A stretch of 63,435 bases of DNA, counting the filler, from Octopus bimaculoides (taxonomy: Eukaryota), in NCBI RefSeq assembly GCF_001194135.2. It is 4 parts of 3 records of this genome, joined end to end, with 100 filler letters (N's around TTAATTAATTAA, not from the genome) between each part and the next. Parts side by side here need not be neighbours in the genome. Positions count along the whole stretch, not along the records: positions 1 to 20,661 come from NC_068994.1; 3 more parts are not named here. The stretch is one strand, 5' to 3'. Below the pieces are notes generated by a model. The model was not told the origin of the DNA. It was given only the letters and a program-made list of their open reading frames with translations, and made no database searches. A program made the translations under genes and the position numbers. Position 1 is the first letter of the stretch, and each line of letters opens with the position of its first letter. Below, one piece after another: positions 1,974-13,637 of this stretch.

Positions 1974-2210
1974 GAAAAAAGAAGAAAAGCAGTGATTACC
2001 AAAGAATCAGCAACAGTATGAAATATCCAAATATTACCTTCAGGGTTTGGCGTCAAATGTCTTGTGAAAATTTATGTTTTTCGAGTTCCAACTGCTATGG
2101 TTATTCTTATAAGTCTGACTGGTGTCAATTACTTGTCATGAATGATTGTTGCAACTTCACAAAAGTCCTTTCCGATGGAAACTTTACTGACCTAATTAAG
2201 CCCATAAAAC
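1974..2210 (+). CDS. PAN/apple-like domain exon A (phase 1-1, 237 nt)
   Basis: Long polypyrimidine tract, ttattgcag acceptor, gtaagc donor. Open frame KKKKSSDYQRISNSMKYPNITFRVWRQMSCENLCFSSSNCYGYSYKSDWCQLLVMNDCCNFTKVLSDGNFTDLIKPIK with a C-x3-C-x5-C-x2-Y-x-Y-x4-C-x-L PAN-type core. Confidence 0.8.
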
Positions 2211-2394
2211 GTAAGCGGTTAGTTTACACAGGCACGGAAATATGCCGGATCTAAAAATATTAATGAACACTCTCAAAACTTGTGAAGAGGCAGGAAGCTG
2301 ATACACGGTTAGTAACGAGTGCCCAATGAGAAAATTCGATACAACTTCGAAGGTGTAGTGTATGAGGTGGTGACCGGCTCTGGTGGCAGCGTTT

Positions 2395-2660
2395 GCAACA
2401 ACAACAACAACAGCAGTTGCAGCACATTCGCCTGTAACAACAGCAATAGAAGCAGCTACGGCAGCAACAACAACACCAGCATCGTGTCCTCAATAACAAC
2501 AACAACGACAACGATACCAACAGTAGCAGCAGCAACAGCAGTAGCAGCAACAGCCGCAGCAACAGCAGTAGCAGTAGTAACGGTGCGAACAACAGATACG
2601 GCATTGACAACAACGGCAGCGATAATGACAACAACAGTAACAGCTGTAACACCACTAGCA
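2395..2660. repeat. Degenerate (CAA/CAG/ACA)n trinucleotide repeat
   Basis: Visible repeat; explains ORFs 2260-2661 and 2319-2804. Confidence 0.9.
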
Positions 2661-3480
2661 CAAGGGCACAGGCATGAAAATATGCCAGGTCTACAGGGGA
2701 CCTCTCTCCAGCACCGACTTAGTAATCACAGATCTTCCTTTAGAAGATCAGAAAGGTATAAGATCAAGTCTCTGACCAGCTACGTATGGCGTTTAAAAGA
2801 ATAGGGTACACCATATATAATTAAATAGAGTATCCCAGAACAACCGGCACCGTACCTCAGTGGGTGCAAACGATGTAAGTTTTGTTTGGCCGAGAGAGAA
2901 AGATTTCTGAAAAAACTCACTTGATCCAGGAACCTTCTTTAGTTTCAAAAAGAAGTGTTTACTGAGTGCGCTCATCAGAGGAAATTCCTGATGGAAAATG
3001 AAATTTTCCATTTGCTGACAAAGGAAAAAAAAACAGCCGACGATCAGCTGACCCATCTTAAACACAACTGGAAACGATCTAAGGGAGATATCTACACAAC
3101 TCCCAAGTTTTGGCCAGTTGAATTTCGTTCCTGAGTTTTTGTTTACAAAATTAACTGACAACTATATATTCCTCACTCCAGTTATAGAGGGTTATGTACA
3201 TCTGTCCAACGAGTCTGATGAGTAGCTTATACAACTATAACAAACAAACCTCTAAATAAAATTTTAGAGTGTGCTTCTTTTTGGTTATATGAACTATTGG
3301 TCATATGAACTATTGATTGATTACATATATCCCTTACCTTTTTGTCAATAGAATGCGGCCACAAATACGCGCGCACACACACATACACACGCACACACAC
3401 GCACACACACGCACACACACACGCTCGCAGACATACACATATACATGCAAACATTCGCACGCACGCGCGCACAGACACAT

Positions 3481-3640
3481 ATACGACGGTCTTTTCAGCT
3501 ACCACATCCATTCGCAAGGGTTTTGTCTGCCCCAGGCTATGGTAGAAGACACTTTACCAGGGTCCCACGCAGTGGGTCTGAACCTGAAACCACGTGGCTT
3601 GGAAGCAAACTTCTTACCACAGAGCCACGCCTGCACCTCT
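3481..3640 (-). mobile_element. tRNA-derived SINE head/core (family B, with internal microsatellite)
   Basis: Reverse complement matches 59119-59280 and 35320-35485 (gtggctgtgtggtaag...gtggcaccttgggcaagtgtcttctac-like). Confidence 0.8.
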
Positions 3641-3644
3641 AAAC

Positions 3645-3647
3645 ATA

Positions 3648-3682
<35 letters not shown>

Positions 3683-3772
3683 NNNNNNNNNNNNNNNNNN
3701 NNNNNNNNNNNNNNNNNNNNNNNNNNNNNNNNNNNNNNNNNNNNNNNNNNNNTGAGTATGTGTGTGCGCGCG

Positions 3773-3806
<34 letters not shown>

Positions 3807-10734: not shown

Positions 10735-10983
10735 AGGGCAGACTCTATCAAATGATCATGAATAAAAATATTACTGGATTAAAACACCTGGAGAAGCACT
10801 ATTTGCTGGCTGAATGTAACAAGAAATGTAATCAGAATAACAACTGTGACTGCTTCTATTATCAACAGTTTAATGATTCATGCAGTTTATTGAATTCAAA
10901 TGACTGTACTAACATACTGAATTCTACATTACCGGGGATAAATGATGCCTCGACCATACTGGCAATTTTTCGAGATCGGAATA
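10735..10983 (+). CDS. PAN/apple-like domain exon B (phase 1-1, 249 nt)
   Basis: ttttttcgtttttcag acceptor, A|gtaagt donor. GRLYQMIMNKNITGLKHLEKHYLLAECNKKCNQNNNCDCFYYQQFNDSCSLLNSNDCTNILNSTLPGINDASTILAIFRDRN. Confidence 0.85.
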
Positions 10984-11626
10984 GTAAGTGAATAGCTTAT
11001 TTATTCGTTCATTAACTGATTAAGAAGTTCTGGGTTTACAAGTGTGGTAGAGTGGCTGTTGGCAAACTATTGATGTGTCGAGACACGACTCAAATTTTAA
11101 GTTGTATGAAAGTTATTTTCCACTTCAACCTTGTCACTCATACACTGGAAAATGCATGAATATCAAAAATCCCCTTTTGAAGTGAGACTGGAATATGGTG
11201 AATGTGGTAGAGAAAAAGTTAAGTAGTTGGTCTATCGAGACTGTAGATCAGTTTTAATTCCGAGTCGAAACAAATTCACTTCCTTCATGCCATCAGTTAA
11301 AACATGAACATCCAATGTCACAGCTTTTCTTCCAGCCCAAGCTAAAACAAGAGTTCCATATGAGGTTTCTCGACCTGATAAAAATAGCAATCAAACTGCC
11401 CCGAGACAACATAGGACACACTGTAGAATGTTGTTCTAAACTGGTTGACTGGATGGTCACAGTTGGAACACGTTTGACGCCAGATCAGAAGAGGATCCGC
11501 TGGTGTCCTAAATGTGACTAGCCCTTCACTTTGGGTTTGTAGTTGGTTTGTAAAGAATGTGGGCAGGAGCCCTTCTCGATTTTTATATTATATCCCAATA
11601 AATCCTTGTGTGTATGTGAGGGGATG

Positions 11627-11669
<43 letters not shown>

Positions 11670-12215
11670 ATGGTTACCGACAGGTTTGTAGTAGGTAATC
11701 GAAATATCTGTAAGTGTATGTAAAGACAAAAGAGTAATGGTAGAAGAATATAAATTTAAAGGATTTGTGAAAACGCGCGAAGCTGAAATGAACATTTTGT
11801 GTAGAAAAGATGCGGGACGATACCTCAGGGCAATGGATGGTGTTGCTGATCATCAGCGGTGGTAACAGTTACAGATCCGCTAACTCTAATCCTGCAGACC
11901 TATGATCAAAAATCTTTCAGCCGTGACCAATCCGTCTGTTTGCCTTCAATGAGGCACTACGATGCCTAAAATATCGTTCTTTATTTTAGATGTCACGATT
12001 TAATGTTTTAGATAGAGAGACTATATAGGGACATTCCGTCAAAGGATCCTGAAACAGTCTCAAATTGACCATTTGATTTCCGACATTCATATTCTACCTT
12101 ATCACCCATGCAGTGTTCGTAGTAGTTTCTCTGTGGTTACAATCGATTTTCCAATGGACGTTGAAGGATGCTTACATTTTAGAAGTTTTGTAAATCATTT
12201 AATAAATCAGCAGTC

Positions 12216-13193
12216 NNNNNNNNNNNNNNNNNNNNNNNNNNNNNNNNNNNNNNNNNNNNNNNNNNNNNNNNNNNNNNNNNNNNNNNNNNNNNNNNNNNNN
12301 NNNNNNNNNNNNNNNNNNNNNNNNNNNNNNNNNNNNNNNNNNNNNNNNNNNNNNNNNNNNNNNNNNNNNNNNNNNNNNNNNNNNNNNNNNNNNNNNNNNN
12401 NNNNNNNNNNNNNNNNNNNNNNNNNNNNNNNNNNNNNNNNNNNNNNNNNNNNNNNNNNNNNNNNNNNNNNNNNNNNNNNNNNNNNNNNNNNNNNNNNNNN
12501 NNNNNNNNNNNNNNNNNNNNNNNNNNNNNNNNNNNNNNNNNNNNNNNNNNNNNNNNNNNNNNNNNNNNNNNNNNNNNNNNNNNNNNNNNNNNNNNNNNNN
12601 NNNNNNNNNNNNNNNNNNNNNNNNNNNNNNNNNNNNNNNNNNNNNNNNNNNNNNNNNNNNNNNNNNNNNNNNNNNNNNNNNNNNNNNNNNNNNNNNNNNN
12701 NNNNNNNNNNNNNNNNNNNNNNNNNNNNNNNNNNNNNNNNNNNNNNNNNNNNNNNNNNNNNNNNNNNNNNNNNNNNNNNNNNNNNNNNNNNNNNNNNNNN
12801 NNNNNNNNNNNNNNNNNNNNNNNNNNNNNNNNNNNNNNNNNNNNNNNNNNNNNNNNNNNNNNNNNNNNNNNNNNNNNNNNNNNNNNNNNNNNNNNNNNNN
12901 NNNNNNNNNNNNNNNNNNNNNNNNNNNNNNNNNNNNNNNNNNNNNNNNNNNNNNNNNNNNNNNNNNNNNNNNNNNNNNNNNNNNNNNNNNNNNNNNNNNN
13001 NNNNNNNNNNNNNNNNNNNNNNNNNNNNNNNNNNNNNNNNNNNNNNNNNNNNNNNNNNNNNNNNNNNNNNNNNNNNNNNNNNNNNNNNNNNNNNNNNNNN
13101 NNNNNNNNNNNNNNNNNNNNNNNNNNNNNNNNNNNNNNNNNNNNNNNNNNNNNNNNNNNNNNNNNNNNNNNNNNNNNNNNNNNNNNNNNNNNN
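12216..13193. other. Assembly gap within the PAN cluster
   Basis: Run of N; could hide exons. Confidence 1.
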
Positions 13194-13296
13194 TCCTTTC
13201 GTCCTTTCTTCTTTTTTCTGTCTTCATTTCTTCTTTCTCTTTCCATCTGAGGTTTTCATTTTCTTTTCAGACAGTCTTCTTTTCTAATATATTATT

Positions 13297-13348
<52 letters not shown>

Positions 13349-13397
13349 TCCCCTTCTGTCTGATGACCCTTACTCTGTTTTCCAATCTTTATTGTAG

Positions 13398-13637
13398 GCA
13401 AAATAAAGAGAAGCAATGATTACCAAAAAATCAGCAACAGTGTGAAAAATCCAAATATTATGTTCAGGACTTGGAATCATTGGTATTGTGAAAATTTATG
13501 TTCTTGGAGTCTGAACTGCTGTGGTTATTTTTATAAGTATGGCGGGTGTCAATTACTTATCATGAATGATTGTTACAACTCGCCAAAAGTCCTCCTTTCC
13601 GATGGAAACTTTATTGATCTACGTACACCCATAAAAT
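13398..13637 (+). CDS. PAN/apple-like domain exon C (phase 1-1, 240 nt), paralog of exon A
   Basis: ttattgtag acceptor, gtaagc donor. KIKRSNDYQKISNSVKNPNIMFRTWNHWYCENLCSWSLNCCGYFYKYGGCQLLIMNDCYNSPKVLLSDGNFIDLRTPIK. The upstream intron is also homologous to 1770-1973. Confidence 0.8.

Follow-up and report, generated by a model that had tools for sequence, protein, structure and literature searches.

What does a group of small, cysteine-rich exons in the octopus genome encode, and where does the gene that carries them begin and end? The exons lie in a 63,435-nucleotide (nt) stretch of Octopus bimaculoides DNA that was joined from four parts of three genomic records (the window), within its first part, positions 1–20661 from NC_068994.1, which is the gene study region throughout. 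A preliminary description of the sequence had recognised a leader on two short exons and three domain exons, here called A, B and C, and had read them as a tandem cluster of small secreted proteins with PAN/apple-like domains. Our analysis bears out the exons and departs from that description on the kind of protein. We think it probable, with appreciable doubt, that the locus holds the 5′ two-thirds of the O. bimaculoides ortholog of the O. sinensis gene LOC118765931, encoding a type I cell-surface glycoprotein, together with exon A of a neighbouring duplicate.

The loci compared were that of O. bimaculoides LOC106880439 (L001; protein P0002), a gap-free O. sinensis locus (L004) carrying LOC118765932 (P0005) and LOC118765931 (P0003, 411 amino acids; P0007, isoform X1, 458 amino acids), an O. 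vulgaris locus (L005; P0009) and a Logan contig of 1041 nt from SRR11869385 (L003). The gene had been described as missed by the open reading frame (ORF) track, which is correct for a prokaryote-style ORF track only; it is already catalogued in UniProt as an uncharacterized protein (A0A0L8FY39_OCTBM, P0001), unstudied and poorly modelled. No mention of these loci or of octopus PAN proteins was found in the literature, and Rfam gave zero matches in the study region.

Domain exons and the splicing of B to C

All exons, junctions and phases proposed earlier were reproduced exactly in the sequence (Table 1). When spliced, exon 1, the mini exon and exons B and C form an open frame of 190 codons that ends in phase 1 and reads MALYTSCLLQISFVSLL/AYIFGGYYIVE/GRLYQ...RDRN/SKIKR...PIK, where slashes mark exon junctions. 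Module B has six cysteines and three N-glycosylation sequons, and module C has six cysteines. The boundaries, phase and donor motifs of exons A, B and C are common to 11 further exons in L001, L003, L004 and L005, including B-type exons with the same boundaries in L001, L003, L004 (three copies) and L005. All 14 module exons are open, 231–255 nt long, multiples of three and in one phase. Donors differ by type, being gtaagtgaat in six of seven B-type copies and gtaagcggtta in six of seven C-type copies (gtaagtggtta in O. vulgaris); two O. vulgaris module exons differ slightly from the type-specific motifs. The symmetric phase 1-1 character of the domain exons, which makes them shufflable, is confirmed for A, B and C, which are clearly duplicated and chained. 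As a separate observation, the donor sites are kept well past the usual consensus across paralogs whose exons differ by 20–50%.

Module A is a further copy of the C-type exon, separate from C as had been supposed. Its splice motifs (acceptor ttattgcag/, donor /gtaagcggtta) are of the same type as those of every C-type exon, and it shares 64.6% amino acid identity with module C (tblastn, E=1.5e-27). At the DNA level, the duplication extends over 1780–2225 and 13197–13652 (80% identity). Module B resembles A and C over the cysteine core only (tblastn, E about 0.05–0.09), and tblastn revealed no fourth module in the study region. The closest relatives of A are the modules of O. bimaculoides LOC106880439 (79% amino acid identity) and O. 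sinensis LOC118765932 (74%), and module C is 72–78% identical to modules C1 and C2 of O. sinensis LOC118765931.

Whether C is spliced to B or belongs to a separate gene with exons in the assembly gap between them had been left open; existing models place C directly after B. A0A0L8FY39 (162 amino acids) is 100% identical to B plus C from an internal methionine of B onward and joins the two at the predicted junction. The homologous junction is used in P0002, in P0003 and P0007 (LOC118765931, twice) and in P0009, NCBI models from three Octopus species. P0002, which UniRef names "Apple domain-containing protein", consists of MVRQYLN (the last seven residues of a B-type exon), a C-type module and a terminal exon, and its splice sites in L001 are homologous to those in the window; P0005 is its O. 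sinensis ortholog. The models of LOC118765931 (P0003 and P0007) run B-tail, C1, B2, C2, stalk and transmembrane (TM) segment, and P0003 splices a C-type exon straight to a B-type exon (PIK/W/FGAYEIILNKNITG). The O. vulgaris locus (P0009) is a compact unit of B, C and terminal exon. The flanks of the gap at 12216–13193 are collinear with a paralogous intron in L004 (11979–12215 with 10321–10543; 13196–14010 with 12385–13195). The O. sinensis ortholog has a B–C intron of about 400 nt without the whole gap interval (L004 45321 continues at 45348) and still splices B to C, so no exon is needed in the gap.

Two further features of the modules were noted. The linker between B and C is strongly basic throughout the family (KIKR, KRK, KKK or QKK); in the window gene it reads K-I-K-R/S (10975–10983 plus 13398–13412, ...RDRN/SKIKRS...), resembling a dibasic proprotein-convertase site, and module A also starts with a basic stretch, KKKKSS (1974–1990). 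Such a linker could allow processing between modules or could merely be charged. In the Logan contig, positions 209–457 form a further B-type exon with intact splice sites that is only 43–57% identical to the other B modules, a sign that the family has more members, or occurs in more species, than can be seen in the annotated proteomes.

Table 1. Positions of exons, introns and related features in the window and in the compared loci
Feature	Sequence	Position	Strand	Description
Module A exon	Window	1974–2210	+	237 nt; phase 1-1; C-type (A-subtype); encodes ...KKKKSSDYQRISNSMKYPNITFRVWRQMSCENLCFSSSNCYGYSYKSDWCQLLVMNDCCNFTKVLSDGNFTDLIKPIK
Putative core promoter and 5′ untranslated region	Window	4522–4605	+	TATAAA at 4522–4527, 79 nt upstream of ATG
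Exon 1 (putative)	Window	4606–4656	+	51 nt; ends in phase 0; ATG context aaagaaATGG; donor gtaagt; encodes MALYTSCLLQISFVSLL
Mini exon (putative)	Window	9231–9261	+	31 nt; phase 0 to 1; acceptor cag; donor gtaagt; AYIFGGYYIV plus first base of E
Module B exon	Window	10735–10983	+	249 nt; phase 1-1; acceptor cag; donor gtaagt
B–C intron	Window	10984–13397	+	holds the 978-N assembly gap 12216–13193
Module C exon	Window	13398–13637	+	240 nt; phase 1-1; acceptor tag; donor gtaagc
Presumed intron after C	Window	13638–20661	+	rich in repeats and retroelement debris
5′ exons	L004	28436–28486; near 43420		signal exon; mini exon
LOC118765932 unit	L004	9918–10163; 12574–12813; 19497–20072		B; A-type exon; terminal exon (cassette site)
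LOC118765931 modules	L004	44879–45127; 45535–45765; 49539–49787; 50184–50423		B1; C1; B2; C2
LOC118765931 terminal exon	L004	61277–61771		cassette site
Terminal-exon cassette	L001	29921–30402
Terminal-exon cassette	L005	~15002–15442

Assignment of the modules to the PAN fold

The claim that the modules are PAN/apple domains stands as far as the fold is concerned, with consistent weak profile matches, and falls short in Pfam, where all scores are below the gathering threshold. Module B matched PAN_1 (E=0.0018; 18.5 bits against a gathering cut-off of 21.4) and module A matched PAN_2 (E=0.019; 15.5 bits against 21.1), and module C alone gave no Pfam match. P0004 scored 18.2 with PAN_1, P0007 scored 16.6 with PAN_1 and 15.3 with PAN_3, and B-type modules also matched KIAA0319_N; overall, the matches to these four models had E values of 3e-4 to 0.04, and all four belong to one clan. 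When a profile of 12 modules was compared with all PDB sequences, PAN/apple proteins took eight of the nine top places (E 0.018–1.1), including Colletotrichum copper oxidase PAN domains, TgMIC4, EtMIC5, SML-2 and the factor XI apple domain, and the alignments span the C-x3-C-x5-C...C core.

AlphaFold2 predicted a structure for module B from a 10-row alignment (predicted local distance difference test score, pLDDT, 71.8; predicted template-modelling score, pTM, 0.57) with the order beta-alpha-beta-beta-alpha-beta; a prediction for B and C together (six rows) had a pLDDT of 45 and was unusable. The top ~50 Foldseek matches of the module B model in the PDB were almost all PAN/apple/MANEC structures (probability up to 0.99, template-modelling score 0.5–0.6, E 0.075–1), among them the HGF N domain, saratin, LAPP, SML-2, plasminogen, SRK, MANEC, TgMIC4, AMA1 and prekallikrein. 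Confidence in the PAN fold is moderate because the predicted structure comes from a shallow alignment.

The cysteine pattern points in the same direction. C27-x3-C31-x5-C37-x9/11-C49 is invariant in 12 of 12 aligned modules and aligns to the same cysteines in the PAN/apple chains of the PDB. Five cysteines in all are invariant in these modules, and little or no variation is seen at an N-I-T/M site and at several further positions. The fifth cysteine (C57) and the sixth lie inside the core region, the sixth being subtype specific (CDC in B, NCC in C, DCC in A). In none of the modules is there a cysteine N-terminal of C27 or near the C terminus, so they lack the outer disulfide that links the two ends of a true apple domain. 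The lines of evidence are each weak or moderate but agree, and the modules are best called divergent PAN domains.

With the PAN/apple superfamily (PAN_1–PAN_4, MANEC; HGF N, plasminogen PAp, factor XI/prekallikrein) the octopus modules share a length of about 80 residues, a putative extracellular location, a core C-x3-C-x5-C...C-x-L that maps onto a helix and beta-hairpin, a predicted alpha/beta fold like that of the HGF N domain, plasminogen, SRK and prekallikrein, and a tandem arrangement with one exon each; they differ in their sub-threshold Pfam scores, the missing outer disulfide and their detection only in Octopus. The apicomplexan microneme lectins TgMIC4, Sarcocystis SML-2 and Eimeria MIC5, from unrelated organisms, are among the best profile and fold matches and are likewise tandem PAN/apple surface proteins, binding galactose-type glycans, but they are secreted adhesins that act in complexes and have no mucin stalk/TM exon, and orthology is not detectable. 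The leech salivary proteins saratin (the top template-modelling score, 0.61, probability 0.99) and LAPP are invertebrate single PAN-fold proteins and the nearest precedent for the earlier suggestion of a venom or secretion; these are small, soluble, single-domain collagen binders, whereas complete octopus members have two to four modules and an anchor. LET-653-type apical-matrix proteins of C. elegans (PMC4970718) also carry N-terminal PAN modules followed by a Ser/Thr-rich mucin-like region, but they have a ZP domain and are luminal matrix components, whereas the octopus C terminus is a mollusc-type stalk/TM region without ZP.

An exhaustive HMMER profile search of 1.84 billion representatives found only five proteins that match the PAN modules, and these took all of the top five places (ranks 1, 3, 4 and 5 best-match a PAN module; rank 2 includes a module fragment). 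The named ones are all from Octopus, plus one Logan contig. The earlier proposal of a lineage-specific family is upheld in that, at detectable similarity, the family is restricted to Octopus.

Orthology with O. sinensis and the two ends of the gene

Window positions 4235–5967, 7900–8371, 8497–8897 and 9127–11169 map in order to L004 28064–29766, 38016–38488, 42842–43240 and 43319–45321, the first three at 90–91% identity. Judged from these alignments, everything in the study region from 3753 on corresponds by position to part of LOC118765931, as its ortholog. Four runs of N fall in the region of the exons (3683–3752, 6921–6930, 9021–9030 and 12216–13193); they touch no exon and break no frame. 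The gap at 6921–6930 lies inside intron 1, where orthologous anchors are about 1.9 kb apart versus about 8.2 kb in O. sinensis, and the interval contains no known exon. The gap at 9021–9030, also inside intron 1, sits within a CATA/TGTA microsatellite whose flanks are collinear with L004. To the right of the gap at 3683–3752 the sequence is orthologous to O. sinensis (85–91%). To its left, nothing orthologous to O. sinensis was found, only paralog or short interspersed nuclear element (SINE) matches of 72–80%, so that A is next to the gene only by way of an unverified scaffold join. From the sequence, A may come from another unit or paralog, or may lie upstream in the same transcript as B and C.

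Several observations concern the sequence around A and this gap. Beyond A, other units remain homologous for just 15 nt after the donor (to 2225), and there a CAA/CAG/CAN-rich low-complexity block begins (2226–2700) that is open on both strands (ORFs 2319–2804 on the plus strand and 2260–2661 on the minus strand) and bracketed by a direct repeat of ~25 nt (ggcacggaaatatgccggatcta / ggcatgaaaatatgccaggtcta); it is possibly an inserted element. The frame at 2319–2804 was considered as a mucin-like exon following A and rejected, as it has no Pfam match, TM segment or homolog and looks like low-complexity sequence. Directly left of the gap lies a SINE-like element of about 150 nt (3475–3650), with many copies of 72–83% identity in L001, L004 and L005.

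At the 5′ end, O. sinensis also has the TATAAA, and over the 200 nt that precede the ATG the two species are 94% identical. Exon 1 has retained its ATG, its open frame and its gtaagt donor in O. sinensis (MALHASCLLEIFLVSCL), at 84% nucleotide identity; 6 of 17 residues differ, yet both versions are hydrophobic. The O. sinensis mini exon (ACLFGGYYTV) likewise has an intact acceptor, frame and donor, with 28 of 31 nt identical, but the flanking intron is as conserved as the mini exon, so this support is only moderate. Exon 1 is the only candidate between A and B for an ATG-initiated, phase-0 hydrophobic exon with a consensus donor. It is plausible that it encodes the N-terminal part of a signal peptide and that the mini exon completes the hydrophobic leader. 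An extracellular location agrees with the N-glycosylation sequons and with the downstream TM topology of relatives, the hydrophobic leader itself lying on two candidate exons. Paralogous signal and mini exons were not found in L001, in the LOC118765932 unit of L004 or in L005; where they would be expected, L001 is interrupted by a gap, and the L004 unit and L005 carry SINE/microsatellite insertions.

At the 3′ end, all relatives that are complete there (P0002, P0003/P0007, P0005 and L005) proceed from the phase-1 donor of a C-type exon to a terminal exon. It starts with GG, giving Trp at the split codon (T+GG), and P0002, P0003, P0005 and P0009 read PIK, PIR or PIA and then W at this donor. 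The peptide encoded by the terminal exon begins with a mucin-like stalk rich in Thr and Ser, continues with a PMCPCVCE motif and the segment ELEILKDNLKKELAVDKKKLSKTIRAKTSAPDERRSAQ, and ends with a TM helix (GIGFIGVILLSALPIFIFII) and a short cytoplasmic tail. The description of the products as small and secreted is not sustained by this comparison, for the complete relatives all carry stalk, TM helix and tail after the C-type exon. Within 1–20661, tblastn with P0002, P0003, P0005 and two mollusc anchors did not locate a terminal exon and returned chance matches only; a candidate piece, MCTCSCEE at 3817–3840, was rejected, sitting in a microsatellite-like stretch. The distance from C-type to terminal exon in relatives is about 1–15 kb (about 15 kb in L001; 6.7 and 10.9 kb in L004), and the sequence after C extends for only 7 kb, so the gene is probably cut at the edge. 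The window gene most likely runs beyond position 20661. A0A0L8FY39 takes an internal Met of exon B as its start and runs through the C donor to a stop (...PIKCKRLVFC), and the simplest reading of its C terminus is an annotation artefact.

The terminal exon follows the pattern CxCxC ... ELxVDKxxLSSxxRKKTSAxDxRxSA ... TM helix and short tail, for which Pfam has no model. In the same HMMER search, >1,200 representative proteins matched this stalk/TM cassette at E<=1e-3; of ten matches checked for names, five were from bivalves or a gastropod (oysters, scallop, clam, abalone). The terminal exons of the octopus paralogs and orthologs belong to this mollusc cassette, which is absent from 1–20661. 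In the scanned proteins of other molluscs it is joined not to PAN modules but to C-type lectin, MAM or IgGFc-binding ectodomains. The octopus family therefore looks, from these matches, like a lineage-specific ectodomain that may have been placed on a general mollusc anchor cassette, and given the company the cassette keeps, a surface-receptor role fits.

The repeat-rich sequence downstream of C contains a retroelement ORF at 17471–17965 (+) with a sub-threshold zf-RVT match (E=5.7e-4), to which a fragment at 277–413 is related. An interstitial telomere-like tandem repeat of about 110 nt (18269–18381; TTAGGG/TTTTAGGG variants) abuts a gap at 18388–18686, and inverted or direct repeats of 130–280 nt lie near that gap (17980–18250 with 18869–19149; 18087–18220 with 20461–20595; 86–88% identity).

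Alternative readings and the evolution of the family

As an ortholog of LOC118765931, the gene would open with a short signal peptide contributed by exon 1 and the 31-nt mini exon; after it come a B-type and a C-type PAN-like module, each encoded by a phase 1-1 exon of its own. Judging from the relatives with complete 3′ ends, a terminal exon past the edge would add the stalk, a small cysteine motif, a conserved juxtamembrane segment, one TM helix and the tail. Binding of a glycan or protein ligand would fall to the PAN modules, kept off the membrane by the stalk, and module number would vary by tandem duplication and the chaining of phase 1-1 exons.

A number of observations count against this interpretation. 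The leader exons occur in no annotated protein (three homolog searches, one started from the O. sinensis leader), and the NCBI models of O. sinensis start inside B-type exons. Exon 1 (84%) is less conserved than its flanks (89–94%) and every substitution in it changes the amino acid, so the conservation of its signals could be passive. All junctions rest on gene models and conservation. The Pfam scores for PAN are sub-threshold throughout, and the Foldseek and PDB E values are individually weak. This copy might also have lost its anchor, since the terminal exon was not found in 1–20661 and A0A0L8FY39 ends by reading through the C donor. Finally, a ratio of nonsynonymous to synonymous substitution rates (dN/dS) near 1, with an excess over 1 that is not significant, is also expected of decaying copies, and the 65% nucleotide identity of exon B to its O. 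sinensis counterpart, at a dS of about 0.7, makes strict orthology doubtful.

If the leader exons are spurious or mark an alternative promoter, exons A, B and C might belong to one longer transcript (...B'-A-B-C-...) that starts upstream of the window. The phase-1 donor of A fits the phase-1 acceptor of B (C+AG = Gln), O. sinensis P0003 provides a precedent for C-type to B-type splicing, the signal exon is in no model, and P0007 joins B of an upstream unit to C1 of the next over about 35 kb, skipping the signal exon. We nevertheless regard such a transcript as unlikely. In O. sinensis the upstream unit ends in a terminal stalk/TM exon of its own, about 8.4 kb before the signal exon, which argues for separate genes; the 5′ exons have conserved their ATG, frame and donors; and A lies beyond the unverified scaffold gap, at a place where O. 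sinensis has nothing orthologous to it. The P0007 model (L004 10001–61774) itself starts inside the B exon of LOC118765932 and, on its way to C1 of LOC118765931, leaves out a module, a terminal exon, the conserved signal exon and B1; it reflects either transcription running on from one tandem paralog into the next or a chimeric prediction from paralogous read mapping. We consider improbable a small, secreted and anchorless protein of about 190–197 amino acids (signal, B and C) ending just after C, as the read-through end of A0A0L8FY39 and the lack of a terminal exon within 7 kb after C would have it. The donor T/gtaagcggtta is conserved in all C-type exons, the four models of relatives that go on beyond the C-type exon all use it and each time yield Trp, the read-through peptides are not conserved between copies and thus look like intron, and a terminal exon up to 15 kb away, as in the relatives, would be beyond the reach of 1–20661.

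The exons in the window could also be decaying duplicates, that is, unprocessed pseudogene exons of functional paralogs elsewhere in the cluster. NCBI gave no protein model for the locus, homology around A breaks 15 nt past the exon with no terminal exon behind it, and pairwise dN/dS (0.5–1.8) is close to or above 1. Against decay, A, B and C keep their frames, splice sites, six cysteines and invariant residues. Under simulated neutral substitution from the type consensus, the chance that an exon stays free of stops was 0.05–0.34 across the module exons and 0.08–0.34 for A, B and C, far lower jointly (~1e-6 for B-type and ~1e-5 for C-type exons, joint chances that shared ancestry overstates somewhat). 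Clear orthologs with full models have the same high dN/dS, so fast change is a trait of the family and not of decay, and we find this explanation very improbable. Scarcely credible is an origin of the modules in a transposable element or repeat consensus. The window is rich in repeats (the zf-RVT ORF, SINE-like copies and microsatellites), but the search of 1.84 billion representatives listed only five proteins with a PAN module or a fragment of one, and the exons have canonical splice sites, gene models in three species and no transposable-element domain.

In the LOC106880439/LOC118765932 ortholog pair, the two modules each have a dN/dS of about 1.6, compared with 0.96 for the stalk and 0.51 for the anchor. 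Positive selection was considered, dN/dS exceeding 1 in several pairs, and not accepted, the counts being too small (Fisher p=0.29). Around exon B, conservation with O. sinensis falls into a trough (window 10327–11026, L004 ~44480–45170) that reaches about 400 nt into the upstream intron, which a few hundred bases off is 87–94% identical. From this pattern, it looks like exon B may have been replaced by conversion from another copy, rather than changed by selection alone. The family would have grown by tandem duplication of whole B–C units and of exon pairs within a gene (B1-C1-B2-C2 in O. sinensis), duplications that the symmetric phase makes possible without a frameshift. An ectodomain that changes amino acids as fast as or faster than silent sites while keeping frame and cysteine scaffold fits a recognition molecule.

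A bolder proposal, which we hold to be distinctly doubtful, is that the locus belongs to an octopus-only tandem cluster of cell-surface PAN-lectin receptors under diversifying selection and with exon exchange, forming a fast-evolving recognition system. Were it true, amino acid change in the modules would outpace silent and intronic change, exon B would have been swapped relative to its positional ortholog, a new ectodomain would have been plugged onto the general mollusc stalk/TM cassette, and the receptors would have a role in immunity, gamete recognition or contact chemosensation.

The main yield is a correction of annotation, as the existing models of the family all look incomplete: A0A0L8FY39 is without both ends, the NCBI models start inside B-type exons, and one O. 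sinensis isoform bridges neighbouring genes. In their place stands a coherent architecture of leader, (B-C)n PAN-like modules, mucin stalk and TM anchor, an example of the duplication of phase 1-1 domain exons and of a lineage-restricted ectodomain on a mollusc-wide anchor cassette. Should the fast evolution of the ectodomain prove adaptive, cephalopods, animals whose innate recognition repertoire is poorly known, would have in this cluster a candidate recognition system.

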